Of a stretch of 64,000 bases of DNA, positions 1 through 16,903 are shown in pieces. The notes below the pieces were generated by a model that saw only the letters and a program-made list of their open reading frames with translations, searched no databases and was not told the DNA's origin. The translations under genes and the position numbers were made by a program. The stretch's first letter is position 1. Every line of letters begins with the position of its first letter. The stretch is taken from the sequence record OR620964.1; one strand, written 5' to 3'.

Positions 1-18
1 CGCTTCCTGCGTAACGCA

Positions 19-228
19 ATGGAGCAAGTTCTAGAGTCGTGTGATAAATATAAACTACCTGTAGATCGCCAGATAGCAATTCAGCGAGTATACGGTGGAC
101 TCGGGGGAGTGTCGTGGGCAGAAGTACAGACAGTGCTTGATGATATTTGTGATAAGCATAAGTTTAGTCTTTACGCCTACCTCCCAACTACGTATGATAC
201 TCAATTTGTACGCGGGACAACTCGCTAA
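19..228 (+). CDS. hypothetical protein
   Basis: 69-aa ORF, co-oriented with the downstream gene run; no recognisable motif. Confidence 0.5.
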   Translation: MEQVLESCDKYKLPVDRQIAIQRVYGGLGGVSWAEVQTVLDDICDKHKFSLYAYLPTTYDTQFVRGTTR

Positions 229-245
229 GTACACGGGATGAAGTT

Positions 246-569
246 ATGAGAGCGATTCGTGGCTTTGATTTTATATATTATGGGGATGGCACTAACGACG
301 GTCAGCAATTAATTGACGTACTTGACTTAGACCAAGATGCGAAGACCATCCGGCTAACGTTCTTTGCCGGAAATACTTCTACTGTTATTCGTGCGTTGCA
401 GCAGAATTCGGTAATATATACACAAGCAGAAAGTGGCCTGTATGAAATGAAGTACAAATGCGGGTTCAAAAATCTGGATGCAACGGCTGTACCAGAACTT
501 TCTTCGGTGACATTACGATTGGTAGAAGCTAAGTTCTATCAAGGTGTCACAAACATAGATTATCAATAG
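246..569 (+). CDS. hypothetical protein
   Basis: 107-aa ORF tightly packed in the + strand run. Confidence 0.7.
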   Translation: MRAIRGFDFIYYGDGTNDGQQLIDVLDLDQDAKTIRLTFFAGNTSTVIRALQQNSVIYTQAESGLYEMKYKCGFKNLDATAVPELSSVTLRLVEAKFYQGVTNIDYQ

Positions 570-580
570 GACAATTAATT

Positions 581-1264
581 ATGTATTCCGCAAAAGAGAT
601 AGAGAGTAAGCTGGCAAAGATAGACTATAACTTCTATTCACGGCCTAGCGAAGCATTGCTTGATGAAGTATTCCGTGATGGTAAGAGTCGTGTTCTTGCC
701 TCAGGTAACACGACACGCTTGTGTAAGTTATCTGATACCTATTTCGATTTCTGTTGGGCACAGGTAGCACAGTTCTGTGTCAGTTCGTACAACGCTGTTG
801 AGATCGCGTTTATGGTAGGCATTCAACCTATCTATGTTGCTGCATACATCAATCGCTATGGGTCTGACTGGTCAGTTAAGTTATTCCAGCGTAAAGGCAT
901 TTCAGAAATTTGCCGTGACGAATATTCGGTTGTGCAGACCAAAGACTTGTTCTGGTCTGTCTATGCAATCCAGCAACGTCTTGTTCCACGCACTGCGCTT
1001 GTTACTGAGGCACAGAAACGAATGCATGGACTGCTTTGCCAAAAACGTTACAGTGAATTCCAAGCTGCGGCATCACATACGCATACCATGCTTATTTCAC
1101 TTGTCACAAATGATCGCCAGGCTATCTTTAATGACCCTCGTGTGAATAAGAAGACAAAGGCCGAAGAAAAACAATCAGACCCAGATCTGGTTCGTATTCG
1201 TCCTGTTGTCATTCCAGCACAATCGGATCGCCCTGCATTCAATGCGCATCTAAGACAATATTGA
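581..1264 (+). CDS. hypothetical protein
   Basis: 227-aa ORF, AGGA RBS upstream; no motif recognised. Confidence 0.75.
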   Translation: MYSAKEIESKLAKIDYNFYSRPSEALLDEVFRDGKSRVLASGNTTRLCKLSDTYFDFCWAQVAQFCVSSYNAVEIAFMVGIQPIYVAAYINRYGSDWSVKLFQRKGISEICRDEYSVVQTKDLFWSVYAIQQRLVPRTALVTEAQKRMHGLLCQKRYSEFQAAASHTHTMLISLVTNDRQAIFNDPRVNKKTKAEEKQSDPDLVRIRPVVIPAQSDRPAFNAHLRQY

Positions 1265-1279
1265 TAAATAAGGTAATCA

Positions 1280-2047
1280 ATGAACGTAGATAAAACAATG
1301 CCTTCAGGCAAGTGGGAATTTGATGAACCAGTAGCTGCCGTATTCGATAACATGCTGGCCAACTCGATTCCATCGTATGACCGTATGCGTGACCTGACGT
1401 TTCGCTTGGGTAAACGTTTCGTAACACCTGGTTCAACTATTGTTGATCTTGGTGCATCACTAGGCCGTGCTATTGAACCGTTCTGTGAGTATTTCGGTCC
1501 GTACATGTATATTCATGCGGCAGATAGACCTGAGCCAGACCGAGAGATAGGCAATCATTACAGCCTGTATGAAACAGCACCTGCAATGCGTGAGCGTCTT
1601 GCGAAGAATGACGTGTTGAATGCGGCAGATGCAAAACTTGAATCCGAATCTCTTGTGGACGTTGATACGTTTCGTTTTAGTGAGCAGGTTGAATGCTCAC
1701 TGATCCTGTCCGTGCTAACACTACAGTTTACGCCTATCGAACATCGCCAACATATTCTGGAAAAGGTCTATGACTCTCTCCAGACAGGTGGTGCATTCAT
1801 TCTTGTTGAAAAGGTTCTTGGCGACGATAACTATCTGGACAAGCTGTTGGTAGATACTTACTATCAGATGAAAGGTGGTAACGGGTACTCGCAAGAATCC
1901 ATTGCTACCAAGCGTAAGTCGCTAGAAGGTGTTCTGGTTCCTGTTAAGGCAGCGTGGAATGAAGAACTATTACGCAAGGCAGGATTTAGCCGCGTTGAAT
2001 GCTTCTACCGAGATCTTAACTTCGCTGGATGGATCGCGATCAAGTAA
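1280..2047 (+). CDS. cmoA: carboxy-S-adenosyl-L-methionine (Cx-SAM) synthase, CmoA family
   Basis: WEFDEPVAAVFDNMLANSIPSY, IVDLGASLG, LTLQF, GGAFILVEK, NGYSQESIATKRKSLEGVL and AGFSRVE..LNFAGWIAIK align motif by motif with E. coli CmoA ([52 protein letters not shown]), including the Arg of the KR motif. Confidence 0.93.
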   Translation: MNVDKTMPSGKWEFDEPVAAVFDNMLANSIPSYDRMRDLTFRLGKRFVTPGSTIVDLGASLGRAIEPFCEYFGPYMYIHAADRPEPDREIGNHYSLYETAPAMRERLAKNDVLNAADAKLESESLVDVDTFRFSEQVECSLILSVLTLQFTPIEHRQHILEKVYDSLQTGGAFILVEKVLGDDNYLDKLLVDTYYQMKGGNGYSQESIATKRKSLEGVLVPVKAAWNEELLRKAGFSRVECFYRDLNFAGWIAIK

Positions 2048-2054
2048 TGCATGT

Positions 2055-2074
2055 GGGCTGCCTTCGGGTTGCCC
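2055..2074 (+). other. C(UUCG)G tetraloop hairpin without U-tract between cmoA and the amide ligase
   Basis: GGGCTGCC-TTCG-GGTTGCCC followed by TATCTACT rather than a T run. Confidence 0.55.
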
Positions 2075-2099
2075 TATCTACTATATAAGGAGTATTATT

Positions 2100-2954
2100 G
2101 TGTCTAAGGCACTGGCGATTTCTAAAGTAATCAGACGCACATTGGTGAGCACGTTTAAGAACGCGAAAACAGAACGTCCGTTCGTGTTCCTGTCCAGCGG
2201 CGCTGATAGTAACTGTCTTTTGTTCGCTGCGCTTGAGGCAGGCAAGCAACCAGTTACACTATCATTTCATATGGAAGGTACTATTAGTCGTGACTTCCGT
2301 CAGGCGCAAGCAACTGCCAAACTGTTTAACGTACCGTTCATTGAAGTTGTATTACCTACCAACGTCGAGACACTCAAGAAAGAGTGCATACTATTAGCCA
2401 AGAAATACGGATGTCGTAGTAAGTCTGACTTCGAATGTGTCTGGCCTATGTACCACGCGTTCCGTGCTGTTGCGAAATATGCAAAGAAACACAAGATTGC
2501 TTCACCTACAATCTACACAGGTCATGCGGCTGATATATACTACGTTCTTTCCAAGAAAGGTAACATGCATTATAAAGATCGCCCAGACGATTATCGCAAT
2601 GAGCGCTTTGTAGATCCTAAACTATCACAGAGACACATACTGCCTTCGATTGCTTCTGACCTTGAAATTTCTAATGAAATACCATGGGTCGATAAGAAAA
2701 TCTTGAAATCATTCCAAGGTGCTTCTATCGCTGACGTCAATAAGCCTCGTCAGAAAGAGCCGTCACGTCTAGCCTTTGATAGTTATTTCTCCCAAACGAA
2801 AGTCTATCAACATACGAATTTCCAACTCGGTGATAGCGGCATTTCGAAACATTTTGAAGTATTGTTGTCAGATCCTGAATGGAATCCCGACAACAAGTTT
2901 CGTGCTGTCATCGGTGTGTACAACGAACTCTGCCGAAGACTCGGAGTGGCGTAA
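2100..2954 (+). CDS. asparagine-synthetase-like (N-type ATP pyrophosphatase) amide ligase lacking the glutaminase domain; CmoY-like candidate
   Basis: PP-loop VFLSSGADS, D...A...A..F.VP.IEV, and IYTGHAADIYY (cf. TGxGADE); 284 aa, synthetase domain only; GTG start at 2100 behind AAGGAG (the track start at 1929 overlaps cmoA). Confidence 0.82.
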   Translation: MSKALAISKVIRRTLVSTFKNAKTERPFVFLSSGADSNCLLFAALEAGKQPVTLSFHMEGTISRDFRQAQATAKLFNVPFIEVVLPTNVETLKKECILLAKKYGCRSKSDFECVWPMYHAFRAVAKYAKKHKIASPTIYTGHAADIYYVLSKKGNMHYKDRPDDYRNERFVDPKLSQRHILPSIASDLEISNEIPWVDKKILKSFQGASIADVNKPRQKEPSRLAFDSYFSQTKVYQHTNFQLGDSGISKHFEVLLSDPEWNPDNKFRAVIGVYNELCRRLGVA

Positions 2955-3526
2955 TGATTCGCGTATTTGATTCCGGCGCAGGAGGAGCATACGTATCGGA
3001 GTTGCTTACTGCGCACGGAGTACATAACAAACTAAGCATGTTCCCTAACATGTTCCCGTTTGGTACTAAGACAGCCGACCAGTTACTTAGCTTATTTCAT
3101 GATTATCGGAATAGTGTTACTGGTACTGTTTTCTGTGCTTGTAACACTATGAGTCTTGTGCTTAACTCCAATGGGTACGACTTTACCTCATGTGATGTTA
3201 TTCCTACATTTCCTAATCTGTCTCCTGATGCGCCAGTTTGCTACGGCACAAAGAATACAGTTTGTCTGGCTCAGATACTGTCACCTAACCTTAGAGTTCG
3301 TGCCGTGCCTAATCTTGTTTCTATGGCAGAAGATGTATATCAAGGTAGGGCTGATAGGAAAACAGCGCTGGCATTATGGGAACAAGAAGTTAGAGAAACA
3401 ATTCAACTAGGATCTACACACTTGTCATGGCTAGCCCATACTTTAGGTGTAGCTGGTGATCATGTTGAGCCGGACTATATGCGCTTATACGTAGAGCATC
3501 TGTCTGACGAAACAATAGGCATATAG
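2954..3526 (+). CDS. glutamate racemase (MurI)-like protein, second catalytic Cys replaced by Ser
   Basis: IRVFDSGAGG, PFGTKT, FCACNTMS and QLGSTHL (canonical LGCTH); ATG overlaps the ligase stop (TAATG); 190 aa. Confidence 0.85.
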   Translation: MIRVFDSGAGGAYVSELLTAHGVHNKLSMFPNMFPFGTKTADQLLSLFHDYRNSVTGTVFCACNTMSLVLNSNGYDFTSCDVIPTFPNLSPDAPVCYGTKNTVCLAQILSPNLRVRAVPNLVSMAEDVYQGRADRKTALALWEQEVRETIQLGSTHLSWLAHTLGVAGDHVEPDYMRLYVEHLSDETIGI

Positions 3527-3541
3527 CTTCTGGATATAATA

Positions 3542-4177
3542 ATGAAAAAGATTATTAATGTTTTCGATTCTGTTCTAGGTGCGAACTATGTATGTGGTCT
3601 ATTATGTGACGCTGGCTATGATGCGCGTCCGTATACACCACGACGTCAATACGTATCTCGCACGAACTCCGGCCCGGCGTTAACTATTGGCACACGAAGT
3701 GTTGAAGAGGTTAGCGACGAAATAAGCGAGGCGCTTGTTGCGATTCGTGGTAACTGGCTAATCAGTAGTACATCTGCCAGTCTTGTTGCACAGGATATGC
3801 TTGACCTGAAAGGGCTGTCTGAGAATATTGTATATGCAATTCCTGAACTTGATGGTAACCTACCTATATTGGGATCTGCCTTGACCGTCGATAGGGCTAG
3901 ACGCATACAGCGATTGCAATCAATCCATCGACGAGGCAAAAGCTCAAGAGCAGCACCGCTAGTCGATGCTTCGGATTTGTTGGCGCAATTTGAAAACTTA
4001 GCGTACTACGAAGATGAGCCTCAGGCATTCCGTCCTGAATTCGATGCGCTTGTTGGCGATAAGAAGTTTCAGTTAGGTAGTTCTAACCTTGCTCACTATG
4101 CCAAGCTGTGTAAAATTACAAAGCACACAGTTATTGATTATGTAGGTCTGGTGGCACGTCACTTGGAGACAAGATGA
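3542..4177 (+). CDS. degenerate glutamate-racemase-fold paralogue, both catalytic Cys absent
   Basis: INVFDSVLGA, IGTRSVEEV, ISSTSAS (for ACNTAS), QLGSSNL (for LGCTHY), VIDYVGLVARH. Confidence 0.7.
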   Translation: MKKIINVFDSVLGANYVCGLLCDAGYDARPYTPRRQYVSRTNSGPALTIGTRSVEEVSDEISEALVAIRGNWLISSTSASLVAQDMLDLKGLSENIVYAIPELDGNLPILGSALTVDRARRIQRLQSIHRRGKSSRAAPLVDASDLLAQFENLAYYEDEPQAFRPEFDALVGDKKFQLGSSNLAHYAKLCKITKHTVIDYVGLVARHLETR

Positions 4178-4434
4178 TTAATACCTTCACTCTAAAGAAG
4201 ACTCCTACCATTCAGGCATGCCAATGGAATGGCAGTAACATAAAAGAAATGGATACTTTCCTAAATGGATCTGGTTACTGTAAAGGACAGTATGTAGAGG
4301 TTGGTGCTGTTGTTAACGGCCAGCCTACTTTACGTAATGCCAGAGTAGGAAGTTATGTAATCAAGGATGCCCTTGGTAACTATTCTGTGCTTTATGCCGA
4401 AGAACTATTTGAACAGTATGTTCTGTCTGACTAG
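4174..4434 (+). CDS. conserved small phage protein (K-p..I.A.QW.G.N type)
   Basis: KKTPTIQACQWNGSNIKEM...VGSYVIKD pattern typical of a widespread phage family; ATGA overlap with the upstream gene. Confidence 0.7.
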   Translation: MINTFTLKKTPTIQACQWNGSNIKEMDTFLNGSGYCKGQYVEVGAVVNGQPTLRNARVGSYVIKDALGNYSVLYAEELFEQYVLSD

Positions 4435-4442
4435 GAACTCAA

Positions 4443-4904
4443 ATGAATCCGTTTGCAATACTCAAGCAGCAGGTAAAAAAGGCGCTTACGCTTGAATCAA
4501 CACTCGAACCCGAACAGCGCGCCATGTTCGACTGGCAGTACCTTGTTAATGTAAGCGGCCGATATTACAAGGTGGGTAAGACAGGAGCAAATACCTGTTA
4601 CTTTAAAACGCCTGATATGGATGAAGAGAAAGCTGTTTATCCAAATGAACTCGTAGATATAATCGAGTCATGGGGTAAAAGTAAATACGTATCTTTTTCT
4701 ATCTGCCATAAGAACTTTGATAATGTACTGGTAGATAATATCAAGGAAGAAGAACGAGCGCTCAAGTCCAAGCCTAAGAAGTTCAGAAAGGGTATCTTTA
4801 TCTGTGGGTACACACCTAAAGGTAAACGAGTTAAACTATGGCGACTGCGTGAAGGTCTAGCAGGATCTCAGTGGGTAGCCGTTGAACGGGAGTCCAAGCC
4901 GTGA
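4443..4904 (+). CDS. hypothetical protein
   Basis: 153-aa ORF with AGGA RBS. Confidence 0.75.
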   Translation: MNPFAILKQQVKKALTLESTLEPEQRAMFDWQYLVNVSGRYYKVGKTGANTCYFKTPDMDEEKAVYPNELVDIIESWGKSKYVSFSICHKNFDNVLVDNIKEEERALKSKPKKFRKGIFICGYTPKGKRVKLWRLREGLAGSQWVAVERESKP

Positions 4905-5296
4905 TTGTGTCTGAAAAAGAATGTCCACCCTTGCTTACAATTATGGGACTAGCTTATTGGGAACGTAGCTCAGACCCAAGTCACGTTGATGCCTTCCCAA
5001 AAGAATTGCGCAACGCCGAAGGTCTCACTAAAGGAACCCGTGCAGAAGGCTGGATGGCTATTGACTGGTCAGAGAATCCTATTGGCTTTATTGCTGACGG
5101 TGAAGAATATCCCGATGATGATACTGTCTGGATTCGATACCTAGGACCATTCAACCATGACGTATGTGTATCCAGTAAAGTCTCATACATAGGTGACTTG
5201 TTTGCTCGTCATGCATTAATGATCCGCCAGAATGCAAGTCGTAGGAAGACAGGCATTAAGAGTTATTTGTATAAAACGTTTGGTCGTAATAAGTAG
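4901..5296 (+). CDS. hypothetical protein
   Basis: 131-aa ORF, GTGA overlap with the upstream stop. Confidence 0.7.
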   Translation: MIVSEKECPPLLTIMGLAYWERSSDPSHVDAFPKELRNAEGLTKGTRAEGWMAIDWSENPIGFIADGEEYPDDDTVWIRYLGPFNHDVCVSSKVSYIGDLFARHALMIRQNASRRKTGIKSYLYKTFGRNK

Positions 5297-5385
5297 TAGA
5301 ATACTGGGGCTATCGGGCATCTTGTCTTGTAGCCTGAGGTGGGCACTGCCTGCGTCGAACCTAATCCACTAATAGGTAAGACAAA

Positions 5386-5769
5386 ATGAAAATAACTGAA
5401 CAAGTAGAATTCAAATCGAAGTACATTGCGGATGATGGTATGATTAACTTTGCAGACTGTACGCAAGATAGCTTAGATATCATTGCCTCAGATGTATTGC
5501 AGCATTTTGGTTGTATTGCTACGCTTGCTCAAGGTCAGACTGCCGCAATTGAGGGCAGATACTTCGAGGAAGAGACTATCAAGTTAAGGATGGCTAGATC
5601 AGATTGGTCTAATGTATCCGCCTTGTTGAAAGAAAAAGTAGCAGATGCACTTAGTGGTAAGCATCTTCGTAAGGGAGGTCGAATAACTCTCAGGCAAGTG
5701 AGTATGCATGATATAGGTAATTCAGAATTATTCATCAGTCTGATAGTCGGATTTCCAGCGCGAGTGTAA
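5386..5769 (+). CDS. hypothetical protein
   Basis: 127-aa ORF followed by a terminator. Confidence 0.7.
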   Translation: MKITEQVEFKSKYIADDGMINFADCTQDSLDIIASDVLQHFGCIATLAQGQTAAIEGRYFEEETIKLRMARSDWSNVSALLKEKVADALSGKHLRKGGRITLRQVSMHDIGNSELFISLIVGFPARV

Positions 5770-5770
5770 T

Positions 5771-5797
5771 AAAAAGGGTGGCTTCGGCTGCCCTTTT
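5771..5797 (+). terminator. intrinsic terminator, potentially bidirectional
   Basis: AAAAAGGGTGGC-TTCG-GCTGCCCTTTT. Confidence 0.85.
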
Positions 5798-5928
5798 CTG
5801 ATCTTATGCTACATAAAACCACCCATTTTGTTCGAGTAGAACCATGCCTAGGCAGCGTATAGGTAGGCTAATATTGACCTAAATACCACCCCTTTTCTGT
5901 ACCGTGCACAAAGCACTAGAAATATAGA

Positions 5929-5952
5929 AAAACTGTAAATATAGAGTATAAT
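5929..5952 (+). promoter_or_regulatory. putative phage promoter motif, copy 1
   Basis: AAAACTGTAAATATAGAGTATA(AT), identical over 22 bp to 23852-23873; ends in TATAAT 12 nt upstream of the dam ATG. Confidence 0.6.
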
Positions 5953-5964
5953 CGAGGATAAGTA

Positions 5965-6792
5965 ATGACGTACATTAGCCCAATGCGGTATCAAGGATGC
6001 AAGCGCTCTCTGGTGCCGGTTATCAAAGAACTCATGCCACAAGATTGTACTCGGATGATTGATGCATTTGGTGGCTCTGCTACTGTGGTGCTAAATATGG
6101 ATACCAAGCACCGCCTGTATAACGAGAGCAATTTCCATGTATTTAAAATCATCGAACTATTTGCCAGAACAGACCCGAAGAAAACACTGAGCAAAATACG
6201 CCGAGTGATAAAGCGATTTGATCTAACAACCGATAACGATGAGCAGTATTATGAATTCCGTAGTTATGCTAATCGTCGGTATGATCCATTGTTGTTTTAT
6301 ATTCTGTCCCGTCATGCTCACAGCAACATGATTCGTTTCAACGGTAATGATGGATTCAATGCTCCGTTTGGTAAGCGAAGCCTGATAGGTAAGATGGATG
6401 TTCTTGAGCGTGAGGTAGTTGAGTTTTATGATAGAATGCATAACGTGCAATTGTCTAATTCTCGATATGCAGAACTACTTAATCGCATAAGCCACCAGCT
6501 CGATTCTACTTTCATCTATCTTGATCCTCCTTACTTGGCCAGCGGTGCAAACATCTATGACTCTTGGTCTGAGGAATTGGATATCAAGATGATGGCCAAC
6601 CTTGATGCTTTAGATGCAAAGAATGTTAAGTGGATGATGAGTAACGTTCTTACACACCGGCATTTCGAAAACAAGCGACTGGCTCGTTGGGCTAAAAACT
6701 ATCGTCTTATTGACGTAGACAAAACGTATAGTCTTGCGAATGCACAACAAGATAGCCACTCAACCCGTGAAGTGATTATCGTTAACTACTGA
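5965..6792 (+). CDS. dam: Dam-family (D12 class) N6-adenine DNA methyltransferase
   Basis: PMRYQGCKRSL, IDAFGGSATV (motif I), FIYLDPPY (motif IV), WMMSN, REVIIVNY. Confidence 0.92.
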   Translation: MTYISPMRYQGCKRSLVPVIKELMPQDCTRMIDAFGGSATVVLNMDTKHRLYNESNFHVFKIIELFARTDPKKTLSKIRRVIKRFDLTTDNDEQYYEFRSYANRRYDPLLFYILSRHAHSNMIRFNGNDGFNAPFGKRSLIGKMDVLEREVVEFYDRMHNVQLSNSRYAELLNRISHQLDSTFIYLDPPYLASGANIYDSWSEELDIKMMANLDALDAKNVKWMMSNVLTHRHFENKRLARWAKNYRLIDVDKTYSLANAQQDSHSTREVIIVNY

Positions 6793-8089: not shown

Positions 8090-8498
8090 CAAACTAAAAG
8101 AGCTGTGGGAGAAACGACATGAACTCGCGGCGCAGTTAGCAGAACTGAATGGCTGGACTGTGCAAGATGGTTGGTCCTACGCCGAGTGTAGTGATGTACC
8201 TGCATGGTTCGATGCGCGTGGACAACAGGTACATACGGTTGATGGGTATATGTACCTGTTGTTTGGTACAAAGTTCTGTATTGATACGATGGATCAATAC
8301 AACATGACGGTTGACCGATCTGATACTGGACTTAGACGTGTATCCTTTTCCGTGTTGCTCGATCCCGTAGAAGAAGCAGTTACCTTTGAGGGAGTAGCGC
8401 ACGGAATACAAGAAGCGCTTGTCTTATCTATAATAAATTTCTATGCGTATACAAAGCGCACACAAGAGGTAAACAATGGAACTACCATTATCAATTGA
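8079..8498 (+). CDS. hypothetical protein
   Basis: ORF in the run; ATG 8079 preferred over 8061; weak resemblance of AAQLAELNGW..WFD to small phage sandwich domains. Confidence 0.7.
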   Translation: MLNDKLKELWEKRHELAAQLAELNGWTVQDGWSYAECSDVPAWFDARGQQVHTVDGYMYLLFGTKFCIDTMDQYNMTVDRSDTGLRRVSFSVLLDPVEEAVTFEGVAHGIQEALVLSIINFYAYTKRTQEVNNGTTIIN

Positions 8499-8979
8499 AA
8501 AATGCGTCGCACTTGTTGCTCAGTGCTTTACGCTTGCTACAAGTTCTAAATCAAAACGACGAGCCTGTGGAGCACTGCTTGTTTGTGTACGTGAAGACGG
8601 TGTGCCCGTTGTTATCAGCTCTGGCATTAATGGTACTGCCCCTGGTGCAGATAATGCTTGTGAGCCACCTTGTCTGACATATACATTTGGTCATGTTGTT
8701 CACGCAGAGCCAAATTGTCTAGCTAACTTTGATTCTGATTTTGTGTTCACTGATAGACATATTCTGTTTGTATCGGATAGCCCGTGCCCACACTGCTTCA
8801 AGATAATTGCAGAGCGGGGTATTAAGCACGTTGTGTTCGGCAGGGGTTATCGTATTCAAGAGCATCTAACCGATGAGGTTCTGGCACTTCACGGTATGAC
8901 TCTGACTCAGGTAGATATGCAGAACGTGATTCAATATCTGTCTAACACTGTTACCAGAATTGAACAGGTGATTTGCTAA
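8476..8979 (+). CDS. dCMP deaminase
   Basis: GINGTAPG, zinc motifs HAEPNC and SPCPHC, GIKHVVF. Confidence 0.92.
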   Translation: MELPLSIEKCVALVAQCFTLATSSKSKRRACGALLVCVREDGVPVVISSGINGTAPGADNACEPPCLTYTFGHVVHAEPNCLANFDSDFVFTDRHILFVSDSPCPHCFKIIAERGIKHVVFGRGYRIQEHLTDEVLALHGMTLTQVDMQNVIQYLSNTVTRIEQVIC

Positions 8980-10850: not shown

Positions 10851-11948
10851 ATGTCTCATATTTTTGATTTACGTAATGACGACCACTTCTTTCAATACTC
10901 ACTGGACAATGTAGACTGTCAGTATATGGATCTGGTTAATGCTATTCTGACCGAAGGCACAAAAGAAGCTGATCCGAAACGCAGTGAAGATACTTGGACG
11001 ATGTTACCATCTATCTCTATGACGTTGCGCAATACAGCCATGGCCTTTCCAGTCCTACTATCTAAGCGTACCCGTTACGTGCCAGCTATTGATGAGACGT
11101 GCTGGTTCATGCGCGGTGAGACAAACATCGAGACTCTTAACTCTCGCATATGGGATGAATGGGCAGACGAGTCAGGTGATTGCGGTCCTATCTATGGTTA
11201 CATGTGGCGCCACTGGCCAGATGTAAAAGCATTCCAAGACTTCACTAAGCCATCTGCTGTTTGTCCGTCGGCCGATGCTATCCGTATTCGCAACGAGATT
11301 ATTCGTATGCGCGCCGCTGGATACAAAGAGACTCAGTTGGCTGATGGGCGAATCCTATTTGAAGGTGAAATTGATCAGTTGTTAAATGCACTGAATGCTT
11401 GTGTTGCGCATGACCGTTCTCGTCGTATTAAAGTTGAAGCATGGAATCCTGGGTACATCCATATGCAGGGCCTTCCTCCGTGTCACACTGGTTTTGAATT
11501 CAACGTAACCAAAACTACTGACTATGAGCGTAAGGCAATGGAAGCTATGGGCCATACTGCTTACGAGGATTCGTTACATCTTACTGCCACAATGAGGAGT
11601 CAAGATGTGGCACTTGGAAGAAGTTTTAACATTATTGGCTATACTACGATGCTCCACCTGTTCGCCAAGTATAGCAAGCTAAATATCGGTAGCTTTACGT
11701 TGAACACTTCTAACACGCATGTTTATGACCATCACCGTGAAGGTCTTGAGACACAGCGTAAGCAGTTCCAAGAAATTTTGGACGTTGTGCGGTCTACTGG
11801 TAAGCCTATGCAGTATCCTGTCCTGCATGTTCACGATGATATCATGAAGATGGAGCCAAAAGAAATGCTGGATAGCATTACCAAAGATCATTTTCTTGTT
11901 GAAGGCTATCTGTCTATGCCTGAGATCAAATTCCGCGTCACCAAATAG
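10851..11948 (+). CDS. thyA: thymidylate synthase (ThyA type) with insertions
   Basis: IWDEWAD, GPIYGYMWRHWP, DQL, SRRI...WNP, catalytic LPPCH, RSQD..LG..FNI, HVYDHH. Confidence 0.95.
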   Translation: MSHIFDLRNDDHFFQYSLDNVDCQYMDLVNAILTEGTKEADPKRSEDTWTMLPSISMTLRNTAMAFPVLLSKRTRYVPAIDETCWFMRGETNIETLNSRIWDEWADESGDCGPIYGYMWRHWPDVKAFQDFTKPSAVCPSADAIRIRNEIIRMRAAGYKETQLADGRILFEGEIDQLLNALNACVAHDRSRRIKVEAWNPGYIHMQGLPPCHTGFEFNVTKTTDYERKAMEAMGHTAYEDSLHLTATMRSQDVALGRSFNIIGYTTMLHLFAKYSKLNIGSFTLNTSNTHVYDHHREGLETQRKQFQEILDVVRSTGKPMQYPVLHVHDDIMKMEPKEMLDSITKDHFLVEGYLSMPEIKFRVTK

Positions 11949-14068: not shown

Positions 14069-14815
14069 ATGACAGATAAGCTAAAGAAAAAGGTGAAAGT
14101 TAAAGGGAAAGAAGAACTGGCGCCTAAGAAGAAAAAGTCGAAAGACAAGCCAGTCAATAAAGCTGTTGGTAAGCCTATTACTAGCATCAAGCAACTTAAA
14201 GGTGCTAAGTATAACCCACGGTTTATTACTGATACGCGACTCAAGTCGTTAGAAAGTTCTATCAGCTCTTTCGGCGATTTGTCAGGTGTTGTATTCAACA
14301 ATAACATTGATTCTGGTGTTCTTATCTCTGGCCACCAGCGTATTGCCTCCATTGCAAAGTGGAAGACACGAGTTGAAGTACAGAAAACGACTGATGCGCA
14401 TGGTACTGTTGGCGTTGGATTTATTCATGCCACCAATCCTAAGTCTGAAAAGACAATCAGTATCCCTTTGCGTATTGTTAACTGGTCAGACAGAAAAGCT
14501 GAGTATGCTGCTAACATCGCGGCAAATGCTCATGGTGGTGAATTCGATAACAGTAAGCTGGCTGCTCTGGTTGAGAAACTGGATATGGATAAAATGCCAA
14601 GCTCGTTAATCGGATTAGACCCTTTGCAACTTCGTGGCCTACGTCAACGCCTTGGTCGTGATGCAGAAGCAATCGAAGCTGCGGCTAATGCTAAGAAGGC
14701 ACCGTCTGGTAAGCAGAATGGATCTACCGGTAAGTTTAAAGAATATACAACTGATGACGTCGAGGCTGAATTACAGCATCGTTGCCCACGTTGTGACTTC
14801 CGGTTTAACTCGTAG
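14069..14815 (+). CDS. ParB/Srx-like domain protein with C-terminal CxxC
   Basis: LKGAKYNPR, SISSFGDLSGVVFN, LISGHQRI, ANIAANAHGGEFD, terminal HRCPRCDFRF. Confidence 0.8.
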   Translation: MTDKLKKKVKVKGKEELAPKKKKSKDKPVNKAVGKPITSIKQLKGAKYNPRFITDTRLKSLESSISSFGDLSGVVFNNNIDSGVLISGHQRIASIAKWKTRVEVQKTTDAHGTVGVGFIHATNPKSEKTISIPLRIVNWSDRKAEYAANIAANAHGGEFDNSKLAALVEKLDMDKMPSSLIGLDPLQLRGLRQRLGRDAEAIEAAANAKKAPSGKQNGSTGKFKEYTTDDVEAELQHRCPRCDFRFNS

Positions 14816-14824
14816 GATAATCGT

Positions 14825-16903
14825 ATGGTAATCAAACCACCTACAATGAAAGAGATCAACGCGCTGGAGAAACCTTGGCGCGGTATGAGCTTCTTTGCTG
14901 GATGCGGCGGCTCCAGTACAGGTCACAAGATGAGTGGCGTTAATATTCTGATTGCAAATGAGTTCGTAGACTCGGCGCGGTTATCATATGAAGCAAACCA
15001 TCCGACGACTAAAATGCTGCCGCAGGATATTCGCCGCTTAGACCCAGCTAAGATTTTGAAGTATCTGGGCCTTAAGAAAGGTGAATTGGATTTGCTTGAT
15101 GGTAGTCCTCCTTGCTTCACAGAAGAGACACTCATTCAGACACGTAGTGGCATGAAGTACATCAACCAAATAGTAGTTGATGACTTTGTTCTTACGCACA
15201 AGCAGCGCTATCGCCGTGTCGTTGAGCCTATGCGTCGCCAGTACACAGGACTAATGCATAAGATTGTTAGTTCTGTAAGTGAGAACAATGCTACACCTGA
15301 ACATCCGTACTATATTCGTCGTATGGAAAATGATGTGCTGTCTGAGCCACAGTGGGTAGATGCAAGAGACGTTCGTGTTGGCGATAAGGTAGCTATTCCT
15401 ACTAGCACACACGCGACTGCTGATCTATCTGAGTGCTCTCAACAGATTCGCCAGTGGGCACAGCATGATGAGTTCTGGTGGTTAGTAGGTCAGTGGGTAG
15501 CTAACGGTAGTATGTCTCGTTGTGGAACACACCGAGCTATTCGTTTTCGTACACACAGCTCCCGTGGTAATCAATTGCTTGAGCAGGCGCTCGACCTGCT
15601 GGAGCTAACATCTATTCAGACTGCGTACTGTGGCGGTAAGTATATAGAGCGCTTTGTTATGAATGAAGAACTGGCAACATTCTTCAAGCTGTTCCTAACA
15701 GATAGTGCTCAAGCCCGACAGATACCAGGCTTTGTTTTAGACTTACCTGACAGGTCACAGCGGCAATTTGTATTCGGCTATCAGTCTCGCTGCTATGAGT
15801 CTACTTTTGGTAAGGCGCTTGTCGTACAAACACGCAGTCTTCCTTTCATGACTGCTATGCGTCACCTAGTTGCTTCTGCGTTCAAGTGCCCGCTGTTTAG
15901 TTTCAATACGCAAGCAGCACCAGAAGAACTTCCTGTTAGTAACTTCACTTATCTACCTGAATCCGAGTGCGGCCAGTGGGTAAACCACCAAGCAGTATTC
16001 TTTATTCAGGAAGAAGATCGTGGTTTTATTCGCGATGCTGATGACTTACTTTGGGTTGATGTGCTGGCCAATACGCAATATGAATCTAGTGTGCAGGTAT
16101 ATAACTTTAGTGTATCACAGGATGAGACGTATGTTGCGACGAATACAGTCGTGCACAACTGTAAGGGGTTCTCTTCTGCTGGCGTTAAAGAGGAAGGCTG
16201 GGGACGGGAAGTAAAATATAGCGAGGATAAAGTCCAACACGTCGATGACCTGTTTGATGAGTTCTGCCGTATGCTTAGTGGTACAATGCCTAAAGTATTT
16301 ACGGCAGAGAATGTAAGTGGTCTGGTTAAAGGTGTGTCTCGTGGATTCTTCATTGAGATAATGAAAGAGTTTGATCGTATCGGATATAAAGTTCGAGCAC
16401 CTTTGATGAATGCTGCTTGGCTTGGCGTACCACAATCGAGAGAGCGTATTCTCTTTATGGGTGTGCGTAAGGATATACCGTTTGATGTGCCTGATGTTGA
16501 GGTTCAAGATACGATAGCCATTCTTGCAGATGCCTTGCCTCACATTGCTGCGTTTAAGGGAATCAGGAATGATATGATTACCTACATTCCTGCAATTAAC
16601 AGTCCGTGCAAGACAATAACAGCAACGGATAGTACGGCATATGAAACAGCACGTTTCAGTACCGCGGGCTTTATCGAAACTATGGAAGGCAAGCGCCGCA
16701 AGCTAACCATTGAAGAACTTAAAGTTATTTCTGGTATGCCTTCTGACTATAAGTTAGTTGGTACTTTCGAGCAACAATGGGAACGACTTGGTCGTGTCTG
16801 TGTTCCGCAGATGACACACGCTGCGTCTAAGGCACTTATCGAGCATGTGTTGATTCCTTATGCGAAGAAGCGTAAGAAGAAAGTTGGGGATATCTTCCGA
16901 TGA
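14825..16903 (+). CDS. C5-cytosine DNA methyltransferase-family enzyme with intein; predicted cytosine carboxymethyltransferase (CmoX-like)
   Basis: Motif I FFAGCGG, ANEF, motif IV GSPP|C (split by the intein), VI AENV, VIII PQSRER, IX R.LTIEELKVISGMP; motif X reads LGRVCVP instead of GNSV/GNAV (Arg codon 16793-16795). Confidence 0.88.
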   Translation: MVIKPPTMKEINALEKPWRGMSFFAGCGGSSTGHKMSGVNILIANEFVDSARLSYEANHPTTKMLPQDIRRLDPAKILKYLGLKKGELDLLDGSPPCFTEETLIQTRSGMKYINQIVVDDFVLTHKQRYRRVVEPMRRQYTGLMHKIVSSVSENNATPEHPYYIRRMENDVLSEPQWVDARDVRVGDKVAIPTSTHATADLSECSQQIRQWAQHDEFWWLVGQWVANGSMSRCGTHRAIRFRTHSSRGNQLLEQALDLLELTSIQTAYCGGKYIERFVMNEELATFFKLFLTDSAQARQIPGFVLDLPDRSQRQFVFGYQSRCYESTFGKALVVQTRSLPFMTAMRHLVASAFKCPLFSFNTQAAPEELPVSNFTYLPESECGQWVNHQAVFFIQEEDRGFIRDADDLLWVDVLANTQYESSVQVYNFSVSQDETYVATNTVVHNCKGFSSAGVKEEGWGREVKYSEDKVQHVDDLFDEFCRMLSGTMPKVFTAENVSGLVKGVSRGFFIEIMKEFDRIGYKVRAPLMNAAWLGVPQSRERILFMGVRKDIPFDVPDVEVQDTIAILADALPHIAAFKGIRNDMITYIPAINSPCKTITATDSTAYETARFSTAGFIETMEGKRRKLTIEELKVISGMPSDYKLVGTFEQQWERLGRVCVPQMTHAASKALIEHVLIPYAKKRKKKVGDIFR
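15113..16159 (+). mobile_element. intein (349 aa) with degenerate LAGLIDADG homing-endonuclease region
   Basis: Starts CFTEETLIQTRSG, block B TPEHPYY, block F VYNFSV, ends VVHN followed by +1 Cys; middle WWLVGQWVANGS and QFVFGYQSRC resemble eroded LAGLIDADG blocks. Confidence 0.93.

Follow-up and report, generated by a model that had tools for sequence, protein, structure and literature searches.

The closest described counterpart of the locus analysed here, an asparagine-synthetase-like ligase gene in a 64,000-nucleotide stretch of sequence record OR620964.1 (the window in what follows), is found in Synechococcus phage S-B43, for which Yang et al. (Nat Commun, December 2025) have described the three-enzyme pathway CmoA-CmoX-CmoY (PMC12783734). 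In this phage CmoA makes carboxy-S-adenosylmethionine (carboxy-SAM, Cx-SAM), SpCmoX makes 5-carboxymethylcytosine (5cxmC) in DNA, and SpCmoY carries out the ATP-dependent ligation of glycine to 5cxmC, both in vitro and in E. coli (PMC12783734). SpCmoX is homologous to C5-methyltransferases and has the two features used to define CmoX, an SPPC motif and Arg350, and SpCmoY is a glutaminase-less asparagine-synthetase homologue (PMC12783734). The glycine amide of 5cxmC is also present in the S-B43 virion DNA, and according to the authors other ligase clusters probably use amines not yet identified (PMC12783734). In the S-B43 system 5cxmC protects DNA against HhaI. To date this one cyanophage, with glycine as the one amine, is the only demonstrated case of the route, and the CmoX/CmoY paper makes no mention of racemases, oxygenases, inteins, glutamate or jumbo phages of the lineage described below (PMC12783734).

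The window comes from Yersinia phage fHe-Yen9-02, to which its first 8 kb are 100% identical (window position = OR620964.1 record position - 184678). This is a 248.7-kb jumbo phage with Y. enterocolitica O:9 as its isolation host, and it is related to the jumbo phages Y3, AD1, pEa_SNUABM_5 and PaBG of Erwinia, Dickeya and Pseudomonas. From homology, predicted fold and profile matches, the protein encoded at 2100..2954 (plus strand) is very probably a 5cxmC-DNA amide ligase. With slightly less assurance, we propose that this CmoY-family amide ligase carries out the last step of a pathway of three enzymes by which the phage hypermodifies its own DNA. The biological role would likely be the protection of the phage DNA from host nucleases, by analogy with 5cxmC and HhaI in S-B43. 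The ligase family and its chemistry are already known, having been published in December 2025; the novelty lies in a separate ligase clade, its obligate MurI-like partner, a degenerate paralogue of that partner, a predicted intein-gated CmoX, and the swapping of ligase plus accessory gene in cultivable jumbo phages.

The ligase and its kinship with SpCmoY

The ligase gene starts with GTG at 2100, behind an AAGGAG with a 6-nt spacer, and stops with TAA at 2952-2954, giving a protein of 284 residues with an AsnB-type synthetase domain only. Since the closest database relatives (P0001-P0007) are likewise 284 residues long and alignable from residue 1, and since a Shine-Dalgarno sequence is present, GTG 2100 is the correct start. 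The GenBank coding sequence fHeYen902_253 starts 141 nt too early, at window position 1959, where it overlaps cmoA by 89 nt, and no support was found for that start. From the end of the CmoA homologue to the ligase start there are 52 nt; a hairpin at 2055..2074, between the two genes, was rejected because its folding is no better than that of shuffled sequence (z 0.2).

When compared with SpCmoY (S-B43 QDH50619; UniProt A0A514ABJ0), the window ligase is 31% identical over residues 24-270, or 87% of the query (tblastn against 2.3 Gb of phage DNA, E 6e-23; blastp E 3.5e-29), and the two proteins can be aligned from end to end, with the invariant residues common to both. Both are stand-alone AsnB-type synthetase domains of ~270-285 residues, with the same PP-loop and conserved core. 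The residues invariant throughout the family are Ser32, Gly34, Asp36, Ser37, Lys108, Glu112, Cys113, Gly141, Asp145, Arg166, Asn214, Pro216, Lys219 and Gln242. Among the motifs of the window ligase, SSGADS occupies residues 32-37 and TGHAAD residues 140-145. The two proteins differ in that the window ligase lies in another clade, at a path length of ~3.3 substitutions per site, and is basic, with an isoelectric point (pI) of 9.5 (Lys plus Arg 15.1% versus Asp plus Glu 10.2%) as against 5.8 for SpCmoY.

Single-sequence scans are nearly blind to this protein, and profiles and structure prediction were required to place it. The window ligase sequence itself gave no Pfam match to PF00733, and phmmer against the PDB gave no match; PF00733 is carried by relatives at 43-54% identity, and in PHROGs the ligase matches the uncharacterised family phrog_26038 (E 5e-68). 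An AlphaFold2 model built on 17 homologues (predicted local distance difference test, pLDDT, 91.3) has beta-lactam synthetase as its top Foldseek match (TMq 0.73), followed by E. coli AsnB, human ASNS, carbapenam synthetase and CarA, and in each of them only the C-terminal synthetase domain is matched. A profile of seven phage ligase homologues finds AsnB in the PDB (E 1e-9), aligned only from AsnB residue 209 on, with the PP-loop, SF..S.D..A, SGxGxD and N..K blocks aligned and with Lys219 of the ligase opposite the Lys of AsnB EKHILRE. The window ligase has the AsnB-type SxGxDS PP-loop and lacks the glutaminase domain; in fact, with the PP-loop beginning ~30 residues from the N-terminus, there is no space for an N-terminal nucleophile (Ntn) glutaminase domain.

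Two other identities were considered and rejected. The match to QueC is limited to the PP-loop (residues 29-86), at 16.6 bits versus 22 in Pfam and 14.4 versus 150.3 in NCBIfam. A glutamine-dependent AsnB or ASNS is contradicted by the missing N-terminal Ntn domain and Cys1, and by the lack of PF00733 at gathering score.

The likeness to AsnB and human ASNS (PF00733) concerns the C-terminal domain, in its fold (Foldseek E 1e-7 to 4e-8) as well as in the aligned PP-loop SGGxDS, SGEGxDE and EK..LR Lys, and the acyl-adenylate mechanism would be common to both. In contrast to these enzymes, the window ligase has neither an Ntn glutaminase domain nor an ammonia tunnel, and its predicted carboxylate is that of a modified DNA base instead of free aspartate. 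The beta-lactam and carbapenam synthetases (1mc1, 1q15), which are the best structural matches, are likewise AsnB-derived and no longer use glutamine, but they keep a dead N-terminal domain, of which the window ligase has none, and they close a ring within a small molecule, whereas the reaction predicted here is intermolecular and takes place on DNA.

A search with the family profile returned 1072 cluster representatives with E<=1e-3, of which 278 reach E<=1e-30; almost all members are stand-alone proteins of 260-295 residues, and with such numbers the ligase is not a chance open reading frame (ORF). A preliminary description, made from the letters of this DNA, had proposed a 284-residue asparagine-synthetase-like ligase with SSGADS and TGHAAD, lying directly after cmoA and lacking an N-terminal Ntn-glutaminase. 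Its coordinates and both motifs are confirmed, the AsnB/beta-lactam-synthetase fold and the matches to the C-terminal synthetase half only agree with the proposed enzyme, and the upstream gene is indeed a cmoA homologue (TIGR00740 and 4GEK matches, see below). The Lys/Arg-rich composition that it had also mentioned holds to a moderate degree.

CmoA, CmoX and the probable DNA substrate

A scan of IMG/VR with the ligase profile yielded 49 loci, and their neighbours were then counted in a census with hidden Markov models. The ligase stands together with a CmoX-like methyltransferase and CmoA in 40 of the 49 loci; six others are Erwinia jumbo phages, in which CmoA adjoins the ligase and CmoX is encoded at a more distant place in the genome, and in the last three the ligase neighbourhood is cut by contig ends. 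Nearly all methyltransferases neighbouring the ligase (43/44) have SPPC and the Arg. The sole exception, the methyltransferase next to CmoA and the ligase in Staphylococcus phage vB-SscS-F1 (L008:5813-6820), shows GSPC where the others have SPPC and Gly in place of Arg350, which could be an alignment artefact. Single-chain fusions of a C5 DNA methyltransferase and the ligase also exist among metagenomic proteins (P0035, P0040, P0072), and two further proteins of this kind (P0153, P0127) have the ligase fused to a uracil-DNA-glycosylase (UDG)-superfamily domain. Taken together, the linkage in IMG/VR, the SPPC/Arg neighbours and the fusions leave a DNA substrate, specifically 5cxmC, as the only well-supported reading.

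As judged from its genes, the pathway is complete in fHe-Yen9-02, which encodes predicted CmoA, CmoX and ligase. The presence of CmoA and CmoX in the phage and the homology to SpCmoY support the earlier proposal that the ligase would activate the 5cxmC carboxylate on DNA. The CmoA homologue (1280..2047, plus strand), a predicted Cx-SAM synthase that would supply the carboxymethyl donor, matches NCBIfam TIGR00740 (E 3.2e-42, under the equivalog cut-off) and, in the PDB, E. coli CmoA (4GEK, E 5.3e-30, in an alignment that takes in the NGYS..KR..LE motif), and is 29% identical to the assayed SpCmoA of S-B43. Compared with E. coli CmoA (4GEK), the phage protein has an insert of ~60 residues at positions 65-125, which breaks the match into two blocks.

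The CmoX-type C5-cytosine DNA carboxymethyltransferase was found by tblastn with PaBG CmoX as the query, which gave a split match in fHe-Yen9-02 at 46% identity. It is encoded at 14825..16903 (plus strand) as a 692-residue precursor, predicted to consist of an N-extein of 96, an intein of 349 and a C-extein of 247 residues, and in Pfam it shows DNA_methylase in two pieces (E 4e-36) together with Intein_splicing and Hint_2. The intein (15113..16159, plus strand) is placed directly before the catalytic Cys of motif IV, between SPP and Cys, the translation reading ...DGSPP/C(intein)...VVHN/CKGF, and the C-extein starts at 16160, which is also the start of the tblastn match. The catalytic Cys is thus the +1 residue (nucleophile) of the intein, so that CmoX would be inactive until splicing. 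Once the exteins are joined and compared with SpCmoX, SPPC is present and an Arg occupies the R350 column. Split tblastn matches suggest the same intein arrangement in many of the Erwinia and Dickeya relatives.

In S-B43 CmoX is adjacent to the ligase, whereas in fHe-Yen9-02 the intein-bearing CmoX lies 11.9 kb downstream of it, on the same strand. Directly upstream of CmoX is a ParB-like protein (14069..14815, plus strand; 'ParB-like partition protein' in GenBank), homologous to PaBG_00176, which likewise precedes CmoX; ParBc partners are often seen with CmoX (PMC12783734).

Like S-B43, then, fHe-Yen9-02 encodes CmoA and an SPPC/Arg CmoX, and the predicted chemistry is the same, an adenylation of 5cxmC followed by amide formation. 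By homology, CmoA would turn SAM and prephenate into carboxy-SAM, and the spliced CmoX would use it to carboxymethylate cytosines of double-stranded phage DNA at C5, giving 5cxmC. As in SpCmoY and the AsnB/beta-lactam synthetases, the ligase would bind ATP at the PP-loop S32-x-G34-x-D36-S37. The 5cxmC carboxylate would then be adenylated with release of pyrophosphate, aided by Lys219 (the equivalent of AsnB Lys449), and an external amine would attack the acyl-AMP to give the amide and AMP. Since the ligase has no glutaminase domain, this amine would be a free amino compound.

MurI-like partner genes

The gene after the ligase, rac1 (2954..3526, plus strand), has an ATG that overlaps the ligase stop (TAATG) and encodes a short MurI-like protein of 190 residues, a predicted glutamate-handling partner of the ligase. 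It matches the glutamate racemase family TIGR00067 with an E value of 1.7e-6, at 27.6 bits versus an equivalog cut-off of 146.65. Its AlphaFold2 model (pLDDT 95.4) has glutamate racemases (MurI) as all of its top 39 PDB matches in Foldseek (TMq ~0.65), and the profile of its family aligns with E. coli MurI 2jfn (E 2.7e-7) at the DSGxGG, P[FY]G-K, ACNT, T..T and xTH motifs, with the first catalytic Cys invariant (CACNTMS). For rac1 and for the next gene, rac2, Pfam gave no match, and phmmer against the PDB returned only chance antibody and other matches. In summary, rac1 resembles MurI in its fold, its glutamate-site motifs and the ACNT Cys; it differs in being ~75 residues shorter, in having Ser for the second catalytic Cys, and in being phage-encoded and always joined to a CmoY-type ligase.

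Proteins of the rac1 type are rare (13 clusters among 5.8 billion proteins), and no relatives were found by the scan of IMG/VR. In every context examined rac1 is directly downstream of a 284-residue ligase. The window ligase itself belongs to a clade of 11 members (SH-like support 99) that is distant from SpCmoY, and every examined member of this clade has a MurI-like gene directly behind it. With respect to the SpCmoY clade, the clade-specific residues, given here as sequence positions only, are Gly146Ile, Gly149Val and Tyr169Arg; Arg169 is Gly in the sister clade. In S-B43 there is no MurI-like gene, whereas the window ligase is translationally coupled to one, and its amine may not be glycine.

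A 218-kb metagenomic contig (JGI Ga0485749_000005; L064/L065/L066; also L010-L012) carries a ligase 82% and a rac1 56% identical to those of the window, and no other gene of this contig resembles anything in the window. The occurrence of the pair in an otherwise unrelated phage backbone indicates that ligase and rac1 move as a two-gene cassette.

Behind rac1 lies rac2 (3542..4177, plus strand), a degenerate rac1 paralogue that lacks both catalytic Cys and the His. When the rac1 and rac2 families were compared by hhalign, the probability was 97.5% (E 7.8e-12, 174 columns). Homologues of rac2 at 27-32% identity are Y3_021, AD1_019 and pEa5_00016, and rac2 is also present in L013-L018, L062 and L063. 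It is conserved in all the related jumbo phages, always immediately behind the ligase region and irrespective of which type of ligase is present (L002:8678-9286, L007:4827-5447, L006:4858-5508), and could be a pseudoenzyme or act as a binding partner. PaBG_00181 (203 residues, after the PaBG ligase) was rejected as a rac homologue, with an hhalign probability of 0.1%. The preliminary description had spoken of racemase neighbours: two MurI-related ORFs are indeed there, but 'racemases' overstates the sequence evidence, because only rac1 keeps a catalytic Cys.

Ligase exchange among jumbo phages and the choice of amine

The related jumbo phages differ far more in their ligases than in CmoA (percentages are protein identities to the window genes). 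In Y3 (L002) CmoA is 94% and the ligase 33% identical, and the accessory gene Y3_020 encodes a 2-oxoglutarate (2OG)-Fe(II) oxygenase (PF13640, E 1.6e-15). In AD1 (L007) the values are 85% and 24%, and the accessory AD1_017 is DgcN-like (DUF1611; NF041892 E 6e-84), while pEa_SNUABM_5 (L006), with 75% and 53%, has no accessory gene beside the ligase; in fHe-Yen9-02 this place is taken by the MurI-like rac1. This suggests that the hypermodification chemistry is swapped in modules, with a near-constant CmoA and with the ligase and its adjoining gene exchanged together. The AD1 genome paper gives AD1_017 and Y3_020 as genes unique to each phage and leaves them uninterpreted. DgcN is an enzyme of the D-glutamate conversion pathway (PMC12363236, PMC10845958), and two different accessory enzymes in the lineage, one MurI-like and one DgcN-like, point to glutamate chemistry.

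On balance, we lean slightly towards an amine other than glycine; the preliminary description had raised this as well, reasonably so, given a distinct clade that always has a coupled MurI-like gene. If the same enzyme attached glycine to the same DNA, the product would be 5-glycylcarboxymethylcytosine, and rac1 would serve some unconnected purpose, such as a change in the D-glutamate pool of the host. Glycine is the sole amine demonstrated for any family member, and the largest ligase clusters are predicted to bind an alpha-amino-acid carboxylate (PMC12783734); the catalytic core is also conserved between the window ligase and SpCmoY. However, the clade of the window ligase is separate and well supported, with Ile and Val for Gly146 and Gly149 of the SpCmoY clade and Arg for its Tyr169, and the ligase is always coupled to a MurI-like gene with which it moves as a cassette. 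It is also fast-changing in near-identical modules, as the comparison with Y3 shows, which fits a changing specificity. Glycine is rather unlikely.

Free ammonia, used as by AsnA-type or NH3-dependent NAD synthetases, would lead to 5-carbamoylmethylcytosine. The lack of a glutaminase domain would agree with this, amidotransferases with a PP-loop are able to work with NH3, and NAD synthetases of the NH3-dependent type are among the weak profile matches of the ligase. Against it, the family members predicted in the published survey to use ammonia are those that carry a glutaminase domain, and the domain-less SpCmoY uses glycine (PMC12783734). Ammonia would also leave the obligate MurI-like partner unexplained, and it is an improbable amine here.

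Our tentative candidate is glutamate. From the gene context, the amine would be glutamate rather than glycine, and rac1 would supply D-glutamate or act on a DNA-linked N-acyl-glutamate. That the attached form is D-glutamate is a more doubtful proposition. Just as speculative is the fuller proposal in which D-glutamate, made on the spot by rac1, is attached to 5cxmC, which would make this the first known case of a D-amino acid on a DNA base.

Several observations weigh against the explanation offered here, in part or as a whole. The second catalytic Cys of rac1 is Ser (GSTHLS) in 13 of the 13 family sequences, so that the protein has one of the two Cys of a MurI racemase. A Cys-to-Ser change at that MurI position is expected to slow racemisation greatly, so that rac1 may lack racemase activity. 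No MurI-like partner accompanies the ligase of the sister clade (pEa_SNUABM_5, 53% identity). The identity of the ligase to SpCmoY is only 31%, the activity of CmoX would hang on an intein splicing that is here predicted only, and DNA-modification data for fHe-Yen9-02, Y3, AD1 and PaBG were not found in the searchable literature. Moreover, neither CmoA nor CmoX was found within 19 kb on either side of the cassette in the 218-kb contig, so the pair is not always physically linked to carboxymethylation genes.

This last observation would also suit a ligase and partner with a substrate other than DNA, which would make or amidate a small glutamate-containing metabolite or a cell-wall precursor, or modify the carboxyl of cmo5U in transfer RNA (tRNA), as would the ancestral role of CmoA in tRNA modification and the normal MurI product, which feeds peptidoglycan synthesis. 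Such substrates are nevertheless very improbable, for the family is almost universally linked to SPPC-plus-Arg DNA carboxymethyltransferases, gene fusions included, and SpCmoY acts on DNA (PMC12783734). No tRNA genes were found within the 64-kb window and no CmoB homologue was seen, and the pI of 9.5 is basic, as expected for a DNA-binding enzyme.

Two further conserved ORFs belong to the module that contains the ligase. The first (4174..4434, plus strand; 86 residues) matches phrog_36935 (E 2e-30) and is syntenic in Y3, AD1, pEa5 and L013-L018. The second (4443..4904, plus strand; 153 residues) matches phrog_23597 (E 5e-65) and is 32% identical to PaBG_00179. In PaBG-like phages (L019-L026) the 153-residue protein (L004:5521-5973) stands between cmoA and the ligase, and because of this position it may be a further component of the pathway. 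No promoter or terminator signals above chance were found in window positions 1..6200. Further along, a thymidylate-synthase homologue (10851..11948) covers its Pfam model over the entire length and, with 365 residues, is ~100 residues longer than it; the same block also contains genes for a dCMP deaminase (8476..8979) and for a Dam-type methylase (5965..6792).

In the thymidine hypermodification of phages M6, ViI and SP10 (PMC8989533), the handle is 5-hydroxymethyl-dU, activated by phosphorylation with different enzymes, whereas here a carboxylate handle would be activated by adenylation. The logic is the same, since in that system too a handle on the base is decorated post-replicatively with amino-acid-derived groups, in evasion of restriction.

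The present locus puts the CmoA-CmoX-CmoY route in jumbo phages that can be cultivated on enterobacteria or Pseudomonas, namely fHe-Yen9-02, Y3, AD1, pEa_SNUABM_5 and PaBG. It predicts a glutamate, perhaps D-glutamate, amide in fHe-Yen9-02, and hydroxylated or differently acylated variants in the relatives. If the D-glutamate reading is true, the related phages Y3, AD1, pEa_SNUABM_5 and PaBG, whose ligase clades and accessories (a 2OG-Fe(II) oxygenase, a DgcN-like protein or none) differ from one phage to the next, would make chemically different 5cxmC amides, and an arms race with the nucleases of the hosts would have produced this set of amides. Novel DNA chemistries of this sort bear on the escape of phages from restriction and other nucleic-acid-targeting defences, and such enzymes could place chosen functional groups on DNA at defined motifs.

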